DNA of 64,000 nt from Macrostomum lignano (lineage: Eukaryota): assembly GCA_002269645.1 (NCBI GenBank), contig NIVC01003285.1, forward strand, positions 42,584-106,583. The letters are read 5' to 3'. The position numbers and the translations under genes are program-made. The notes below the pieces were generated by a model that ran no database searches, was not told the DNA's origin, and worked only from the letters and a program-made list of their open reading frames with translations. Position 1 is the stretch's first letter. Each line of letters begins with the position of its first letter. Positions 908-61,363 of the stretch are shown here, one piece after another.

Positions 908-1029
908 CACGCCTATGCAGAAGCTGAAAAATGGGGAAAGAAAATTCCCTAAGAAACTGATGCTTTTCCCAGCCCCAATGACCTATGCAGATTTTAAAAA
1001 CAGTGTCAGACAAATCTAATCGCCTTGTC
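908..1029 (+). repeat. Left TIR (122 bp)
   Basis: Reverse complement of 3756-3877. Contains CCTATGCAGA twice (912-921, 982-991). Confidence 0.93.
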
Positions 1030-1415
1030 CAAAAATAATAGAATGGAAAATTGAAATTATGTGTTCTCAGCTGCATGTTCAGTATTAGATTCGTCAGTTG
1101 CGCCATTGCAAGTAGTGAAAACAATTGCGTAACAAGAGCAGGCATCAATTGCAAAGTTTAGAGCATAAATTTAAGGGCGTCATAAAATGCTGTACATTAT
1201 TAGATAGAAATTTTGGCAGACAACTCAAATGTACATATTTATTGAGATCTATTGTGATTAAGGGATTGAGAAACAATGAACAGACTATGTACATTCATAA
1301 AGTAGAACATGCCTCTTATCACAAGTTTGCTAACACGCAGACTTCCTTTGAAAATAAAGTTGCAGTCAATTGAAACAATTACCCTCAGTACTCAAATCAG
1401 TTCTCTGGCCTCGCG

Positions 1416-3476
1416 ATGCCAAACTTTCGACGCACACATGAAGAGAATCGTATCTGGTGCTGCATCCTCTGCTTCCGCAAAGCCGATCGCGTTATTTCAG
1501 CTGCTCAGGCAGAACTCATCGAGCAATTTATCCTGCCAGAATTCTGTCATGCCTACATCCGTAATACTCTGCCAGGAGGCATGTGCAGCTGCTGCAGCAA
1601 GAAATTGCAGTCACAGACGTCACCTGTACCGCAAGAACTGCCTGCTCGACTGCCATACCTTCAAATTGTTGCAGATTTGGAGGTTTTGCCACAACTCACA
1701 CGTGAGCATCCGCACTGCTCCTGCTGTATCTGCCAGGTAGTTTCCAGCCCATCAAACAAGCGGGTGGCGGTCTGGCACCCATACATGTCTGACAGCAGCC
1801 GGGCCAACCATAAATTGCCCCAAGGACGACCTGCAGAAACAACTCGAAGCCAGGACAGAGACTCGGAGAAGCGCTGCACTAGGTGCCACTCACTTGTGGG
1901 CAAAGGCCTAAGGCACGAGTGCAGCGTCTCCAGCAAGTTGCAGTACCTGCGCACGCTCAGCCCTACATCAAAAGAGCACATCGCTCATGACGTGATGCGT
2001 GAAAAGCTAAGAGCAGCAGCAGCATCAGGACATGGATCAACGGCTTCTATTTCCAGCGCCACCGGTGGCCCACCAATGCAGCTGAGGCATGCAAGTGATT
2101 CAAATGAGCAGAGAGCGCTGAGGACCGAGACACTAGTAACGTTAAAGACATCTCTCAATCTGAGTGACCGGCAGACAAACATGGCAGCCACAATTATCAG
2201 GCAGGCGGAGGGCAGTCGTAAGGCCGTGCAACCCGGACTGCGGGCAGCTCTGGCAGCCGCAGGCAGCATCGCGGAGAGTTTTTTTGAGATGCGGCAGCTC
2301 AAATTCACTCAAAAGTCCTCAGGTGGCAGCTTTACTGATACCACAAGATGTTCCGTCATATGCCCCGATCTGCAGGGCCTGCTGAGCTTCATTTGCTCAA
2401 AGCGAGGATTTAGTGAGTTCGATGTGAGATTGAAGCTGGGGATGGACGGAGGTGGTGGCTCGCTAAAAATCTGCCTTAGTGTCGCCCCAGTACTGCCTAC
2501 CGAACCACAGGCAGAGTCCACACCTAAGAAGCTGAGCAGGGAGTCGCGAATAAGCAACTTTGGCGTAAAAAAACTGTTTATCATCGCGATTGCTGAGGAT
2601 GTCCAGGAGAACTATGCAAATGTGCGAGCACTTCTAGATGAGCTAGACTTGACATCGATTAAGTTCACAGTCGCTTGCGACTTCAAGCTAGCCAACATCC
2701 TGTGTGGCCTTCAAAGTCATGCCGCAGCTCATCCTTGTCTCTACTGTGAGGGGCAGGCGCCGTGGCAAGTTGCCGGTTCCATAAGAACCCTTGGATCCAT
2801 TCGTCGGATGGCCACGGCATTCGAGGCTGCTGGTAGCTGCCAGCGACTGGCAAGAAACTACGCAAGCTGTGTCAGACAGCCTCTTCTCCCTGGGGCTGAT
2901 TCTACGCCAATGCTGGACCTCGTGCCACCACCAGAGCTGCACATCATGCTTGGTGTGACCAACAAACTGCTCGATCAGCTGAACTCAGCTTGGGGCGACG
3001 ACAAGGCATACAAGTGGGCGCATTCAGCTGGAATCTGTCGCGAGCAGTACCACGGCGGGTGTCTGGAAGGCCCTGCGTGTGTCAGATTGCTGCTTAAAGC
3101 TCAAGAGCTCAAGAGCAACCTGCCATCAAGGCTCCAGGGCTATGCGTCTGCTCTCATGGCATTCGATGCTGTTCGCCAAGCATGCTTTGGGCAACAGCTG
3201 ATGAGCGACTTTTGCCAGAAGATTGCCCAGCTGGAATCCTGCTGCGCTGAACTGAAGCTGGTGCCGACACCTAAGATGCACGCCCTTTTCCACCATGTTC
3301 CGGAGTTCTGCGAGCGATTCAACTCAGGCCTTGGGACCTTCAGTGAGCAGGCAGTCGAGTCTGCACACAGCGACTTTCGTTCGACGTGGCAGCGGTTTCG
3401 CAGGCCTCTGGGGCATGTGCAGTATGCAGAATGCCTGCTGCGCGCAGTTGTTAGCTACAATTCCAGCCATATTTGA
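1416..3476 (+). CDS. DDE transposase, 686 aa, Chapaev-like N-terminal Zn motif plus Transib/RAG1-like core
   Basis: N-terminal H-x7-CxxC...P-x3-CxxC (HEENRIWCCILC...PGGMCSCC). Core motifs GMDGGG (D344), ACDFKLANILCGLQSHAAAHPCLYC (D422, CxxC), PELHIMLG, TPKMHALFHHVPEF and GTFSEQAVESAH (E648). These parallel RAG1/Transib GMD..YDEK..ICTLC..LHCDIG..HKTLAHVPE..ASEGNES. Confidence 0.88.
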   Translation: MPNFRRTHEENRIWCCILCFRKADRVISAAQAELIEQFILPEFCHAYIRNTLPGGMCSCCSKKLQSQTSPVPQELPARLPYLQIVADLEVLPQLTREHPHCSCCICQVVSSPSNKRVAVWHPYMSDSSRANHKLPQGRPAETTRSQDRDSEKRCTRCHSLVGKGLRHECSVSSKLQYLRTLSPTSKEHIAHDVMREKLRAAAASGHGSTASISSATGGPPMQLRHASDSNEQRALRTETLVTLKTSLNLSDRQTNMAATIIRQAEGSRKAVQPGLRAALAAAGSIAESFFEMRQLKFTQKSSGGSFTDTTRCSVICPDLQGLLSFICSKRGFSEFDVRLKLGMDGGGGSLKICLSVAPVLPTEPQAESTPKKLSRESRISNFGVKKLFIIAIAEDVQENYANVRALLDELDLTSIKFTVACDFKLANILCGLQSHAAAHPCLYCEGQAPWQVAGSIRTLGSIRRMATAFEAAGSCQRLARNYASCVRQPLLPGADSTPMLDLVPPPELHIMLGVTNKLLDQLNSAWGDDKAYKWAHSAGICREQYHGGCLEGPACVRLLLKAQELKSNLPSRLQGYASALMAFDAVRQACFGQQLMSDFCQKIAQLESCCAELKLVPTPKMHALFHHVPEFCERFNSGLGTFSEQAVESAHSDFRSTWQRFRRPLGHVQYAECLLRAVVSYNSSHI

Positions 3477-3755
3477 TGTCAAGCATTTTCATGCCTGCAA
3501 AGATTTCTAGGATTTAGCTTGTGTACTTAATATCCATGCACACTTTATTCCATACGGACATTAGCAATAATAAGTGCATGGTTCTCATTTTATAATATTA
3601 ATACTAATACAGTTGCACGTTCCTTTAATGATTAAAATTAATATTAAAACTACGAACTTATATTAACATTAATATTATCGATGGGTTTCGCCTTAAATAC
3701 CTATCATATTACATGTAATTTGCATATAATATAAAAAATTCATATTACCATTTTT

Positions 3756-3877
3756 GACAAGGCGATTAGATTTGTCTGACACTGTTTTTGAAATCTGCAT
3801 AGGTCATTGGGGCTGGGAAAAGCATCAGTTTCTTTGGGAATTTTCTTTCCCCATTTTTCAGCTTCTGCATAGGCGTG
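3756..3877 (-). repeat. Right TIR (122 bp)
   Basis: Reverse complement of 908-1029. Confidence 0.93.
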
Positions 3878-7031: not shown

Positions 7032-7353
7032 AGACAGATGACAAATAAGTAGCTTTCATAGCAACGAGAGCGCAGTTTGAGCTCGAAAAATACACGGGTA
7101 ACACGGATCTCATTTTTTTGAAGAGATCTACTATGCGGAATGCTTCTTCTGGCTAAGAAATGTTAAAATTGTCACCGAACCAGTCGCTCTGCAACGCGCC
7201 AGCTGGCAAGTTAAAAGCCCAATCTGAAAAGCTGAATTCATGAAAGCTCGTATAAAGTAAGGACCATGCGAGATAACCGAATGACTGAACACTACGAATA
7301 ATCTGTTTCGAATGATTAAATCTTGATTTTAAACCAAATTTCGATTGCTAATA

Positions 7354-7838
7354 CCAAATCCCTATGATCCCAAACAACCGAATCCCGATTATCCCAAATA
7401 CCGAATCCCGATTATCCCAAATACCGAATCCCGATGATCCCAAATAACCGAATCCCCATGATCCCAAATAACCGAATCCCGATTATCCCAAATACCGAAT
7501 CCCCATGATCCCAAATAACCGAATCCCGATTATCCCAAATACCGAATCCCGATTATCCCAAATACCGAATCCCCATGATCCCAAATAACCGAATCCCGAT
7601 TATCCCAAATACCGAATCCCGATGATCCCAAATAACCGAATCCCGATGATCCCCAATACCGAATCCCGATGATCCCAAATAACCGAATCCCGATGATCCC
7701 CAATACCGAATCCCGATGATCCCAAATAACCGAATCCCGATGATCCCAAACACCGAATCCCGATGATCCCAAATAACCGAATCCCGATGATCCCAAATAC
7801 CGAATCCCGATGATCCCAAATACCGAATCCCTATGATC
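7354..7838. repeat. Minisatellite, 23-24 bp (CCGAATCCCGATGATCCCAAATAA)
   Basis: About 20 tandem copies seen. Confidence 0.95.
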
Positions 7839-8424: not shown

Positions 8425-9075
8425 AAGGGGATAGTTTGCATTCTAAGGGGATAATGTGCATTCTGAAGGGATAATGTGCATTCTGAAGGGATAATGTGAA
8501 TTCTGAAAGGATAATGTGCATTTTGAGGGAATAATGTGCATTCTGAAGGTATAATGTGCATTCTGAGAGGATAATGTGCATTCTGAATGTATAATGTGCA
8601 TTCTGAAGGGAAAATGTGCATTCTGAAGGGACAATGTGCATTCTGAGAGGATAATGTGCATTCTGAAGGTATAATGTGCATTTTGAAAGGATAATGTGCA
8701 TTCTGAGAGGATAATGTGCATTCTGAGAGGATAATGTGCATTCTGAGAGGATAATGTGCATTCTGAGAGGATAATGTGCATTCTGAGAGGATAATGTGCA
8801 TTTTGAAAGGATAATGTGCATTCTGAGAGGATAATGTGCATTCTGAGAGGATAATGTGCATTCTGAGAGGATAATGTGCATTCTGAGAGGAAAATGTGCA
8901 TTCTGAGAGGATAATGTGCATTCTGAGAGGATAATGTGCATTCTGAGAGGAAAATGTGCATTCTGAGAGGATAATGTGCATTCTGAGAGGATAATGTGCA
9001 TTCTGAGAGGAAAATGTGCATTCTGAGTGGATAATGTGCATTCTAAGGGAATAATGTGCATTCTAAGGGAACAAT
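8425..9075. repeat. Minisatellite, 20 bp (ATAATGTGCATTCTGAGAGG)
   Basis: More than 30 tandem copies. Confidence 0.95.
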
Positions 9076-10542: not shown

Positions 10543-17613
<7,071 letters not shown>

Positions 17614-25656: not shown

Positions 25657-26644
25657 ATGGTTTTCGGATGCACAACATGCAAGCCCAACGAAGCGCTAAT
25701 TATTACAGGCAAGAAATTAAAACCGACGTCCTAAATTCAGAACAAATTAAAACTCGTATATTAGTTTAGACTTATACTCGGATATATAGTTTTTATCCTC
25801 AACACTTTAACATACCAAAAGAAACAAACAGTCGAAGAAACTCTGAAACAGATATCTAAGATAATCTAACCAATGATTCGTGACGTCGTGCGAGGCTTGA
25901 GTCACTACAGTCTACAGAGATAAATACTCTGCAGAAAAAATGCAATTATTATCTGTTGCTTTTAGAGTAATACTTTTTTCATCTAAAGAAAAATGTGGCT
26001 CAGATCACGCCTATTCGAGCGCTATTTATATTGCACTCAAAGTTGACATTTCTTTGAAAAATTATATATACGAGCGTACTGTATTGATACTTTTACCATG
26101 TACATGTGCATTATTCTATCAGATATATGCCGACGAATTTATTTCATCAACTCAATGCTTTCCTACAGGTTGCTGTTATCAATCACCGGTGTTCGTTACC
26201 AATGGATGGAAATGTACGATTCCTGGCATACATAAAGTCCAACGGATGCCTCTGAACGTAATGAAAATCACAGTTGAATCGCCAAGAATTTATGCCAAGC
26301 CGGGTGTAACTATTTCTGTAAACGGCCTATCAGAAGTTCGAATAAATGGCTGGAATCAAGACATGCTGGCAGTGGCTTTCGACAATTTTTTAGGTAAGAA
26401 AGAACACGAGATTGAAGCAATCGTCAAAGAGAAATTGGAGGCCCAGCAAAGCGCTATCATTAGGCAAATGTCAATTGACGAAATCTACATGGATAGAAGA
26501 AAGTTCTGCACAGCCTTCTTCAATGCCGCCTCGGCAGATCTCGAACGAATTGGCATTTCCGTGTTGTCCTACAGGCTGGAAGAAGTCAGCGATGAGGATG
26601 GCTACCTGAAAGCACTGGGAGAGGCGCGTCTCCGGCTCAGCTGA
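25657..26644 (+). CDS. Divergent truncated flotillin paralog (SPFH domain only, 175 aa; possibly a pseudogene); join(25657..25708,26169..26644)
   Basis: MVFGCTTCKPNEALIITG|CCYQSPVFVTNGWK...LERIGISVLSYRLEEVSDEDGYLKALGEARLRLS*. Collinear with FLOT1 up to the start of the coiled coil. GC-AG intron at the same 52-nt position as in FLOT1. Confidence 0.7.
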
Positions 26645-28055: not shown

Positions 28056-30353
28056 ATGGTGTTCGGTTTTCATACCTGCGGTCCGAATGAGGCACTCGTC
28101 ATTTCAGGTAAAATATCAACAATTCTGACTGAAATCATTCTACGTGTATGGAGGTTCGTTTACTAAGAGCAATATGAAATTAGACACTGGTGAAGAGTAC
28201 ATTACATCCCTTCCCTTCACAACCGTCGCTAGGATGCTTTCATACTACGCCAACTTTCATCCCTGGCGGGCGCAAATTCGTGTTCCCGGTCATCCAGCAG
28301 GTGCAGAGGATCATGCTCAACACCATGACCATCACCATTGAGTCGCCCAGGATTTACACCCAGCTGGGAGTGCCCATCACTGTCACCGGGGTGGCCCAGC
28401 TGCGCATCAAAGGTCAAAACAGAGACATGCTGGCTGCCGCTTGCGAACAGTTTCTATCAAAATCTGAGCAACAAATCCAGGAGATTGCGAAGGAGACGCT
28501 GGAAGCTCACCAGCGGGCAATCATGGGCAACATGACGGTCGAAGAGATCTATAAAGACAGAAAGAAGTTCAGCAAAGCCGTATTTGAAGTGGCCTCATCC
28601 GACCTGGTGAACATGGGCATCAGCGTGGTGTCCTACACCCTGAAGGTGAGTGACTGAATCAGTTTGCAATGGAGCTTTTTTAGCATCCAGCATGTACAGT
28701 TCATTCTTAGTCTTGAAGGGTTGACCCTCCTGAGCGCCAGATGAATGTGGCGTTGAATGCATCAGGAGGTAACGTTCTCTCGTTCTATGGAAATTGGAGC
28801 AAAAGCACCGATCCTTCCCATCTCTTTAATGTACTTTTTCTAGCAAAATTTTGTCTGTGGTAGATATCAGGGGTTTGTGGTAGCCATGGATTTTATGGTG
28901 GGAGGGCAAAGCCGAGAATTCTACATCACTCGATTCCTGCAGTATTTTGGGAATCGGTGATATTAGCTCTCATTTTGGCGCCGCAGACGCTCATTTTGGC
29001 GCCGCAGACACTCATTTTGGCGCCGCAAAAACTCATTTTGGCGCCGCAGACACTCATTTTGGCGCCGCACACACTCATTTTGGCGCCGCAAAAACTCATT
29101 TTGGCGCCGCAGACACTCATTTTGGCGCCGCAAAAACTCATTTTGGCGCCGCAGACACTCATTTTGGCGCCGCAGACACTCATTTTGGCGCCGCAAAAAC
29201 TCATTTTGGCGCCACAGACACTCATTTTGGCGCCACAGACACCCATTTTGGCGTCCTGAAGCAAAGTTATTTAATTTACATAACGAGTCAAAAGGTGGGG
29301 CGGGGGGATAAAACATTGGTATGCCCCCCCCCCTAGCTTTTACTGGCGGACGCCCCCCCCCCCGGTCCCCCGGTGGCGACGCCGCTGGTAGAAACCCAGT
29401 TCGCGCAATGAATTTTGCAATAATCTTCCCAATCCGTTTGGGAGAACACACTGTACTTCCTATTTGCGCGGTGGTCAGACACGCCAATCACTGTGCCATT
29501 CTGTGCCCCCCCCTCCTACACCCTGAAGGACATCAACGATGACGAGGGCTACCTGAAGGCGCTGGGCTTGGCTCGCACAGCGCAGGTTAAGCGAGACGCC
29601 CGAATCGGCGAGGCTGAGGCTCAGAAGGAGTCCGGCATCAAGGAGGCCATCGCCGTGCAGACTCGCATGGCGTCCCGATACGAGAATGAGGTGCAAATCG
29701 CCAAGGCGCAGCGCGACTTCGAGCTCAAGAAGGCCGCCTTCGACAAGGAAGTGCAGGCCAAGAAGGCCGAGTCGGACTTGGCCTACGAGCTGCAGGCGGC
29801 CAAAACTCGCCAGCTGATCAAGGAGGAGGAGATGCAGATCAAAGTGGTGGAGCGCACCCAGCAGATCAGCGTCCAGGAGCTGGAGATTGTGCGTCGGGAG
29901 CGTCAGCTGGACGCCAGCGTCCGCAAGCCGGCGGAGGCGGAGCGCTACCGGCTGGAGCGAATCGCCGAGGCGGAGAACTCCAAGATCATCCTGGAGGCTC
30001 AGGCCGACGCCGAGACCGTCCAGCTGAAAGGCGAAGCCGAGGCCTTCGCCATCGAAGCCAGGGCAAAGGCGACAGCCGAGCAGATGGCGAAGAAGGCGGA
30101 TGCATGGAAAGAGTACGGCGAGGCCGCCCGACTCGACCTGGTGCTCAAGGCGCTGCCGAAGCTCGCGGCCGAGGTGGCGCAGCCGCTGGCCAGCGCCACG
30201 AAGATCACCATGGTGAGCAACGGCGGTCGCAACGCGGAGCTGGGAGCGGCCAAGATCACAGGGGAAGTCATGGACATCATGGAGCGACTGCCGGCGATGC
30301 TGCAGTCCATGACTGGATCGGAAACTGGCCTGACAAAGATCACGCCTAAGTGA
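28056..30353 (+). CDS. FLOT1: Flotillin-1, 429 aa; join(28056..28107,28233..28645,29529..30353)
   Basis: [80 protein letters not shown] and AEA/EA coiled-coil repeats. Junctions are phase-consistent. Confidence 0.93.
28868..29387. mobile_element. Degenerate CAG-terminated MITE carrying a minisatellite, within FLOT1 intron 2
   Basis: Ends CAGGGG..GGTAGCCA / TGGCGACGCCGCTG. Flanks GTAGATAT / GTAGAAAC (6/8 match). Confidence 0.5.
28965..29250. repeat. Minisatellite, 21 bp (CTCATTTTGGCGCCGCAGACA)
   Basis: About 13 copies. Confidence 0.95.

Positions 30354-32413: not shown

Positions 32414-34474
<2,061 letters not shown>

Positions 34475-37773: not shown

Positions 37774-61363
<23,590 letters not shown>

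Follow-up and report, generated by a model that had tools for sequence, protein, structure and literature searches.

The stretch of Macrostomum lignano DNA analyzed here (NCBI GenBank assembly GCA_002269645.1, contig NIVC01003285.1, positions 42,584 to 106,583 of the forward strand; 64,000 nucleotides (nt), hereafter the window) carries a flotillin-1 gene, which we call gene A. The subject of this report is the second intron of that gene, whose two borders carry the same short exon sequence and which an earlier note on this DNA had put forward as a candidate intron gain. The exon model of gene A was built from translation and tblastn. On the + strand, coding exon 1 (28056..28107) runs from the ATG to a phase-1 donor, CAG|GTAAAA, and is followed by intron 1 (28108..28232, 125 bp, at the position SG|C), by coding exon 2 (28233..28645), which terminates in ...TCC TAC ACC CTG AAG (S Y T L K155), by intron 2 (28646..29528, 883 bp, phase 0, GTGAGT...AG), which separates K155 from D156 at the site hereafter called K|D, and by coding exon 3 (29529..30353), which extends from D156 to K429 and the TGA stop codon without further introns. 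The gene A product is 429 amino acids (aa) long and has 98-100% identity to Macrostomum lignano proteins; in its spliced form it is identical to GenBank PAA52202.1 / BOX15_Mlig021169g1 (P0122).

Intron 2 has a composite structure, all of it read on the + strand. The first repeat copy, a putative target-site duplication (TSD) with the sequence TCCTACACCCTGAAGG (28631..28646), comprises the last 15 nt of exon 2 and the G of the donor GT. Between it and the second copy lies the DNA that would have been inserted (28647..29513, 867 bp; hereafter the insert), with a TGAGT head and a C8 tail. The insert is made up of a unique left arm of 322 bp (28647-28968), a 21-bp minisatellite with the unit CTCATTTTGGCGCCGCAGACA (28969..29253; 13.6 copies, 92% matches), and a unique right arm of 260 bp (29254-29513), which contains several G and C homopolymer runs and closes with the C8 run (29506..29513; C9 in the other two copies of gene A described below). 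The second repeat copy (29514..29529) comprises the last 15 nt of intron 2, including the acceptor AG, and the first G of exon 3. Within the right arm, the runs at 29294-29371 (G4CG6 ... C10 ... C12 ... C5) are able to pair as a hairpin, and their lengths vary by 1-2 bases among the three copies of gene A, which may reflect either real variation or homopolymer sequencing error.

Retention of intron 2 would be disruptive: the frame continues through VSD into a stop codon, giving a predicted 158-aa product, and the gene therefore needs splicing to function. In P0121 and P0122, both of them transcript-derived models, intron 2 is removed exactly, and an independent model from the ML2 assembly, P0001, uses the same K|D junction. 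The Mlig_3_7 annotation in GenBank was made from genome-guided assemblies of RNA sequencing (RNA-seq) transcripts made with StringTie/TACO (PMC5730564), and the annotated K|D junction is thus itself transcript-derived.

Direct repeat and splice junctions of intron 2

In the window, TCCTACACCCTGAAG is found at exactly two places, 28631-28645 and 29514-29528. The earlier note had described it as a perfect 15-bp direct repeat; it is indeed perfect, and its length needs correction, as identity extends one base further to the right and none to the left, giving 16 bp (28631-28646 and 29514-29529). Copy 1 continues into TGAGTGACTG..., which forms the junction AAG|GTGAGT, while copy 2 is preceded by the C8 run and followed by ACATCAAC... 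Direct reading bears out the description of a repeat that ends exon 2, recurs at the 3' end of the intron, and there supplies the acceptor AG after a C-run. Within the 16-bp repeat, only one of the 17 possible registers permits a GT..AG intron. We also compared this pair with other direct repeats in the window after masking tandem arrays: five exact direct repeats reach 13 nt or more within 6 kb, and of these the flotillin pair is the longest non-tandem one and the only one to admit a GT..AG intron. For any one intron whose AG is taken as given, a 15-nt match would arise by chance with a probability of ~4^-13 = 1.5e-8, and the 16-bp repeat at the borders of intron 2 is far beyond chance.

The two splice sites draw on the repeat in different ways. 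At the donor, the G of the GT is the last base of copy 1, and the target ends in a proto-splice motif, AAG|G, to which the insert adds TGAGT as its first five bases. The earlier statement that the insert begins with GTGAGT therefore holds for the start of the intron and not for the start of the insert, since the G comes from the target and TGAGT alone from the insert. At the acceptor, the whole AG lies inside the duplicated target, and copy 2 (TCCTACACCCTGAAG) is pyrimidine-rich and AG-ending, with a C8-9 run before it; together, C-run and copy 2 make up a polypyrimidine tract ahead of the acceptor. Donor and acceptor occupy matching registers in copies 1 and 2 of the repeat, and splicing therefore removes the insert plus one copy of the repeat (883 nt) and restores the original mRNA, frame, and protein.

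Two further copies of gene A are present in the assembly, on NIVC01000017.1 (L005) and NIVC01002249.1 (L006), and both carry intron 2 at the same place, again starting with GTGAGT and again with the perfect 16-bp repeat at either end. The duplication thus stands on three contigs, which answers the concern that it might be an artefact of one contig's assembly. Intron 2 is fixed in all three assembly copies of gene A, with lengths of 1575 bp (L005) and 1428 bp (L006) compared with 883 bp in the window, a difference that is entirely one of minisatellite copy number. Among the three copies the unique arms diverge by 1-2.5% (97-99% identical), and the 16-nt repeat is unchanged. M. lignano is a neopolyploid with subgenomes S, L1, and L2 and single-nucleotide polymorphisms (SNPs) at 1.9-2.4% of sites (PMC10733133). 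The divergence of the arms is consistent with the SNP frequency of the three subgenomes, and intron 2 therefore predates polyploidisation.

Intron positions in paralogs and distant animals

The K|D intron is absent from two paralogs of gene A in the same genome. The first, gene B (P0002/P0124; locus L001, 17460-20528, and locus L002, 14875-16921), is a second M. lignano flotillin-1 gene with 85% protein identity to gene A and a 4-fold-site divergence from it of ~0.7-0.8, and its sequence across the K|D site, TCCTACACGCTGAAGGACATCAAGGACGACGAAGGCTAC / TCCTACACGCTGAAGGACATC, is uninterrupted. Genes A and B are both followed by an fn3/ANOS1-like gene, which marks them as old duplicates, segmental or whole-genome in origin. 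Introns interrupt gene B at SG|C, E137|V, and Q271|E, and the last two of these, absent from gene A, are also present in Nematostella. The lengths of the gene B introns vary greatly between subgenome copies (intron 1, 7.4 vs 4.8 kb; intron 2, 1187 vs 286 bp).

The second is a truncated tandem paralog upstream of gene A, paralog T (25657..26644, + strand, 175 aa), with exon 1 at 25657-25708, a GC-AG intron at 25709-26168, and exon 2 at 26169-26644. At the K|D site it reads SYRLEEVSDEDGYLKALGEAR without interruption and serves as an empty-site witness. The earlier note was thus right that the neighbouring paralog has no intron here, since the sequence reads straight through, and that neighbour is in fact this truncated 175-aa gene. 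Its retained intron 1 marks it as a DNA-level duplicate and not a retrocopy. Paralog T adjoins all three copies of gene A and not gene B, and its synonymous sites are near saturation relative to both gene A and gene B. Its frame is intact and covers only the SPFH/Band_7 part of the protein; the other copies of the locus have it annotated as a gene, in L006 as a Band_7 gene of 175 aa, and the ML2-assembly model P0001 fuses it with the main gene. In length, paralog T comes close to the 158-aa product expected from retention of intron 2. The SG|C position of intron 1 is common to gene A, gene B, paralog T, and Patiria, which identifies intron 1 of gene A as an old intron; it has no flanking repeat.

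To place these positions in a wider setting, we mapped the flotillin-1 exons of Nematostella vectensis, Schistosoma rodhaini, and Patiria miniata on genomic DNA, and none of the three has a K|D intron. Instead, all three share a phase-0 intron with clear GT..AG borders 18 nt downstream, at ...D(E/N)|GYL. This old E|G site (GACGAG|GGCTAC) is read straight through in every M. lignano copy, and because the three distant animals have the intron and all M. lignano copies read through it, the E|G intron was evidently lost in M. lignano. Exon 3 of gene A has none of the old introns at all, and gene A is without those at 137 and 271 that gene B kept. Nearer relatives were sought by a protein search with the exon-3 frame extended into the intron, which returned only two clusters above 72% identity, both from M. 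lignano, and no other Macrostomum among the best matches. The absence of the position from gene B, paralog T, and the distant animals supports the interpretation of intron 2 as an intron gain.

The insert and competing explanations

What was inserted was approached from several sides. When the arms were locally aligned with exon 2, exon 3, intron 1, the paralog, and intergenic DNA, no score rose above the range of shuffled sequences; judged by sequence, the insert is foreign to the gene and its neighbourhood. We found no terminal inverted repeats in the insert, no mobile-element reading frame or reverse-transcriptase fragment, and no tRNA-, 7SL-, or 5S-like head, while an Rfam scan returned only one chance-level microRNA match (E = 0.25) and a tRNA scan returned nothing. 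The insert has no poly(A) at its ends, the + strand ending in ...CCCCCCCC and the - strand in ...GTCACTCA. We found neither arm a second time in the window, in L001 or L002, or in the L005/L006 flanks, a sample of ~165 kb of M. lignano DNA (~110 kb non-redundant) that excludes only very high copy numbers. Further, in an exhaustive HMMER search with a frame spanning the right arm and the array, 702/702 matches fell on the 7-residue repeat encoded by the array and none on the arm, and the best array-like match was another M. lignano gene model with a near-identical satellite (P0190, UniRef A0A1I8IGW9). Arrays related to the intron minisatellite by a common TTGGCGCC core also lie elsewhere in the window (54657-54747, 56602-58005, and 59118-59828). 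Given these arrays and the satellite in another gene model, the intron minisatellite is a member of a dispersed family, while the arms look unique.

Taken together, we consider it very likely that intron 2 was gained within the M. lignano lineage through an insertion that duplicated its target site. The ancestral exon of gene A would have been uninterrupted, ...GTG TCC TAC ACC CTG AAG GAC ATC AAC.... This exon would have been cut with a 16-nt stagger, some 0.6-0.9 kb of unrelated non-coding DNA would have been joined into the cut, and fill-in of the overhangs would have duplicated the 16-nt target TCCTACACCCTGAAGG. The left junction, AAG|G plus TGAGT, would thereby have become an optimal donor, AAG|GTGAGT, and the second target copy the acceptor, with the minisatellite inside the intron presumably expanding or contracting later. 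As to source, the insert could be an unclassified non-autonomous mobile element or a retroposed RNA, inserted by target-primed reverse transcription in the manner of long interspersed nuclear elements (LINEs); just as well, it could be filler DNA picked up when end joining repaired a staggered break.

The order of events may be read as a history in three steps. First, the E|G intron would have been lost before genes A, B, and T diverged. Second, the introns at 137 and 271 would have been lost in the A lineage. Third, the K|D intron would have been gained in gene A after gene B split off and before the three subgenome copies separated. Most simply, the gain would also postdate the origin of paralog T, whose place before or after the A/B split is obscured by its nearly saturated synonymous sites. 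With ~13 intronic and 4 synonymous exonic positions free to vary, the still-perfect repeat gives a rough estimate of fewer than ~0.18 substitutions per site since insertion, which suggests that the gain falls in the younger part of this interval.

We acknowledge several points that weigh against an intron gain by insertion. The polarity of the gain rests on paralogs and distant animals, as all three subgenome copies are occupied, and the support for splicing consists of transcript-derived gene models and not directly of RNA-seq junction reads. The insert has no recognisable mobile-element hallmark, nor a second copy in ~165 kb. At 16 nt, the repeat exceeds the lengths known from neointrons of Daphnia (4-12) and from introners (3-9). 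Finally, the old E|G position lies only 18 nt away, inviting a scenario of relocation.

In such a scenario, intron 2 would be no fresh insertion into an intron-free exon; the old E|G intron would have persisted in gene A and moved 18 nt upstream, for example through recombination with a 5'-truncated spliced complementary DNA (cDNA) starting TCCTAC..., followed by a change of donor. The proximity of an ancient phase-0 intron in Nematostella, Schistosoma, and Patiria fits this, as do the 3'-biased intron loss of gene A, of a kind attributed to cDNA recombination, and the 3' copy of the repeat, which is contiguous and in frame with exon 3 like the 5' end of a cDNA. However, the E|G intron is missing from gene B and from paralog T as well, and was most simply lost before gene A diverged. 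Relocation would need separate losses in those two genes and also precise removal of 18 nt, whereas the first 18 nt of the intron are unlike GACATCAACGATGACGAG. Proximity is also weak as a clue, since with ~12 old intron positions in 1.29 kb, a new intron has a chance of ~1 in 3 of lying within 18 nt of one of them. We therefore regard relocation as quite improbable.

It seems to us very improbable that the K|D intron existed before the M. lignano flotillin-1 copies diverged and was then removed precisely from both gene B and paralog T, with the repeat of some other origin. Intron losses are frequent in this gene family, but two independent and precise ones would be required here, together with a perfect 16-nt repeat between exon and intron that would have no explanation and a chance probability of ~1e-8 per intron. 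A repeat as old as the A/B split (4-fold divergence at least 0.7) would have picked up changes in the mostly unconstrained end of an intron, and the position occurs in no distant animal that was mapped. Under the Rogers model, an exon segment containing AGGT is duplicated in tandem, and the intron would be a duplicated piece of the gene. This finds an echo in a repeat that ends in AAGG and whose two copies form the borders, but the duplication covers only 16 nt, and the 867 nt in between align with exon 2, exon 3, intron 1, and the flanks no better than shuffled sequences do, so that this origin is ruled out by the lack of exon similarity in the arms and keeps next to no probability. An assembly or annotation artefact, in which the duplication or insert would not exist in the real genome or would not be spliced, might be suspected in a repeat-rich polyploid genome with 36% of the assembly length reported in chimeric scaffolds (PMC10733133) and with intron C and G homopolymer runs that vary by 1-2 bases between copies, but it is scarcely credible against the same structure on three contigs with independent substitutions and different array lengths, and against transcript-derived coding-sequence models that remove the intron exactly on all three contigs and share their junction with the ML2 model P0001.

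Returning to the insertion of foreign DNA, a bolder version would make the insert a copy of an undescribed animal introner of Macrostomum, with a TGAGT head, a C-run tail, and ~16-bp TSDs at AAG|G sites, that seeded other introns as well. We consider this version unlikely; if true, a Macrostomum introner might help explain lineage-specific introns in flatworms. Other introns with repeated borders were sought in the window, L001, and L002 (~120 kb), with repeats of at least 13 nt and then of at least 9 nt with flanking open reading frames. No second convincing repeat-flanked intron was found in these ~120 kb, a sample far too small to judge generality. The extra candidates at the threshold of 9 nt were array read-throughs or chance matches. 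A 13-nt, GT..AG-compatible pair at 450/736 of L002 was rejected as a TSD, being the junction of two diverged Crypton-like copies; the region concerned (L002 200-1300) holds a Crypton-like frame, with weak DUF3504 and Phage_integrase matches that are both below the Pfam cut-off, broken by a diverged second copy of the segment. In the window, a 15-nt pair, GAGGCGCCGCCGCCA (10646-10660 / 12225-12239), was judged to be chance or low complexity and not a TSD; it brackets a 20-bp array (11288-12149), and both of its copies lie in GCC-rich, coding-looking minus-strand sequence.

The window as a whole is rich in tandem arrays, which make up ~35% of its length (22.2/64 kb) and are for the most part strongly strand-skewed minisatellites with periods of 12-47 bp; examples lie at 7353-7838, 8429-9064, 11288-12149, 32854-34221, 48457-50135, and 56602-58005. 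It also holds a 1.4-kb (GTCT)n tract. We rejected the idea that the minisatellite arrays are housed in a common mobile element, as they have no common flanking arms and the window has almost no dispersed repeats outside arrays. An element of 2.97 kb occupies 908-3877. Its terminal inverted repeats measure 127 bp (97.6% identical; CACGCCTATGCAG...), TGTT adjoins it on either side, and it contains an open reading frame of 700 aa; it would probably be a DNA transposon of the cut-and-paste type whose target-site duplication is 4 bp long.

Comparison with known intron gains

Unambiguous, mechanism-revealing intron gains are scarce in animals, most of them coming from Daphnia and a few from tunicates, nematodes, and flies. 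The flotillin case offers a rare clean animal example of the origin of a new intron: every junction is intact, the donor is part target and part insert, the acceptor comes from the second target copy, and paralogous empty sites are present in the same genome. It also bears on how introns are compared, as a gene that has lost an old intron and acquired another 18 nt away would mimic intron sliding in a coarse comparison. We found no report of intron gain in Macrostomum in the literature, and this is apparently the first intron gain of this kind described in a flatworm. Transgenesis is established in M. lignano, which makes the sufficiency of insert plus repeat for splicing directly testable.

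Two of the closest known systems work by duplicating exon sequence or by reverse transcription, and each is matched in part. Rogers in 1989 and Hellsten et al. in 2011 are said to have described the creation of introns by tandem duplication of an AGGT-containing exon segment. As in such introns, duplicated exon sequence with AG|G gives both borders here; unlike in them, where the body of the intron is exon-derived, the body here is foreign. For the second system, TSDs of ~15-16 bp are typical of the staggered nicks made by LINE endonucleases, and LINE-mediated retroposition leaves TSDs of variable length, ~7-20 bp; we know of no cut-and-paste transposase with a stagger as long as 16 nt. The flotillin insertion resembles LINE-mediated insertions, whether of short interspersed nuclear elements (SINEs) or of retroposed RNA, in its 16-bp TSD and in the homopolymer run at the end of the insert adjoining the repeat. 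It differs from them in that this run consists of C8-9 in place of a poly(A) or a known LINE microsatellite tail, and in having no recognisable RNA source.

Introners are reportedly intron-generating transposable elements, a view associated with Huff et al. in 2016. They recruit splice sites from target-site duplications, with reported TSDs of 3-9 bp (PMC9860276). Intron 2 shares with them an insertion with a TSD, splice sites partly recruited from the target, exact splicing, and an unchanged coding sequence. Unlike introners, which form many similar introns at unrelated sites, it has no second copy in our small sample and no terminal inverted repeats. Flatworms are not mentioned in the text of two large introner surveys (PMC9860276, PMC12130899).

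The neointrons of Daphnia pulex reportedly arose at staggered double-strand breaks, as Li et al. are said to have proposed in 2009. They carry repeats of 4-12 bp shared between exon end and intron end (PMC4202315), shorter than the 16 nt found here. As in those neointrons, intron 2 of gene A occupies a position novel to its lineage, its insert is of unidentifiable origin, and splicing restores the original mRNA. Apart from the length of the repeat, the two cases differ in that the flotillin intron is fixed in three subgenome copies, whereas the Daphnia neointrons show presence/absence polymorphism, and in that it is a single case from a flatworm host as opposed to a genome-wide series. Across these comparisons, the gained intron of M. 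lignano flotillin-1 belongs with the known Daphnia-type or introner-type neointrons.

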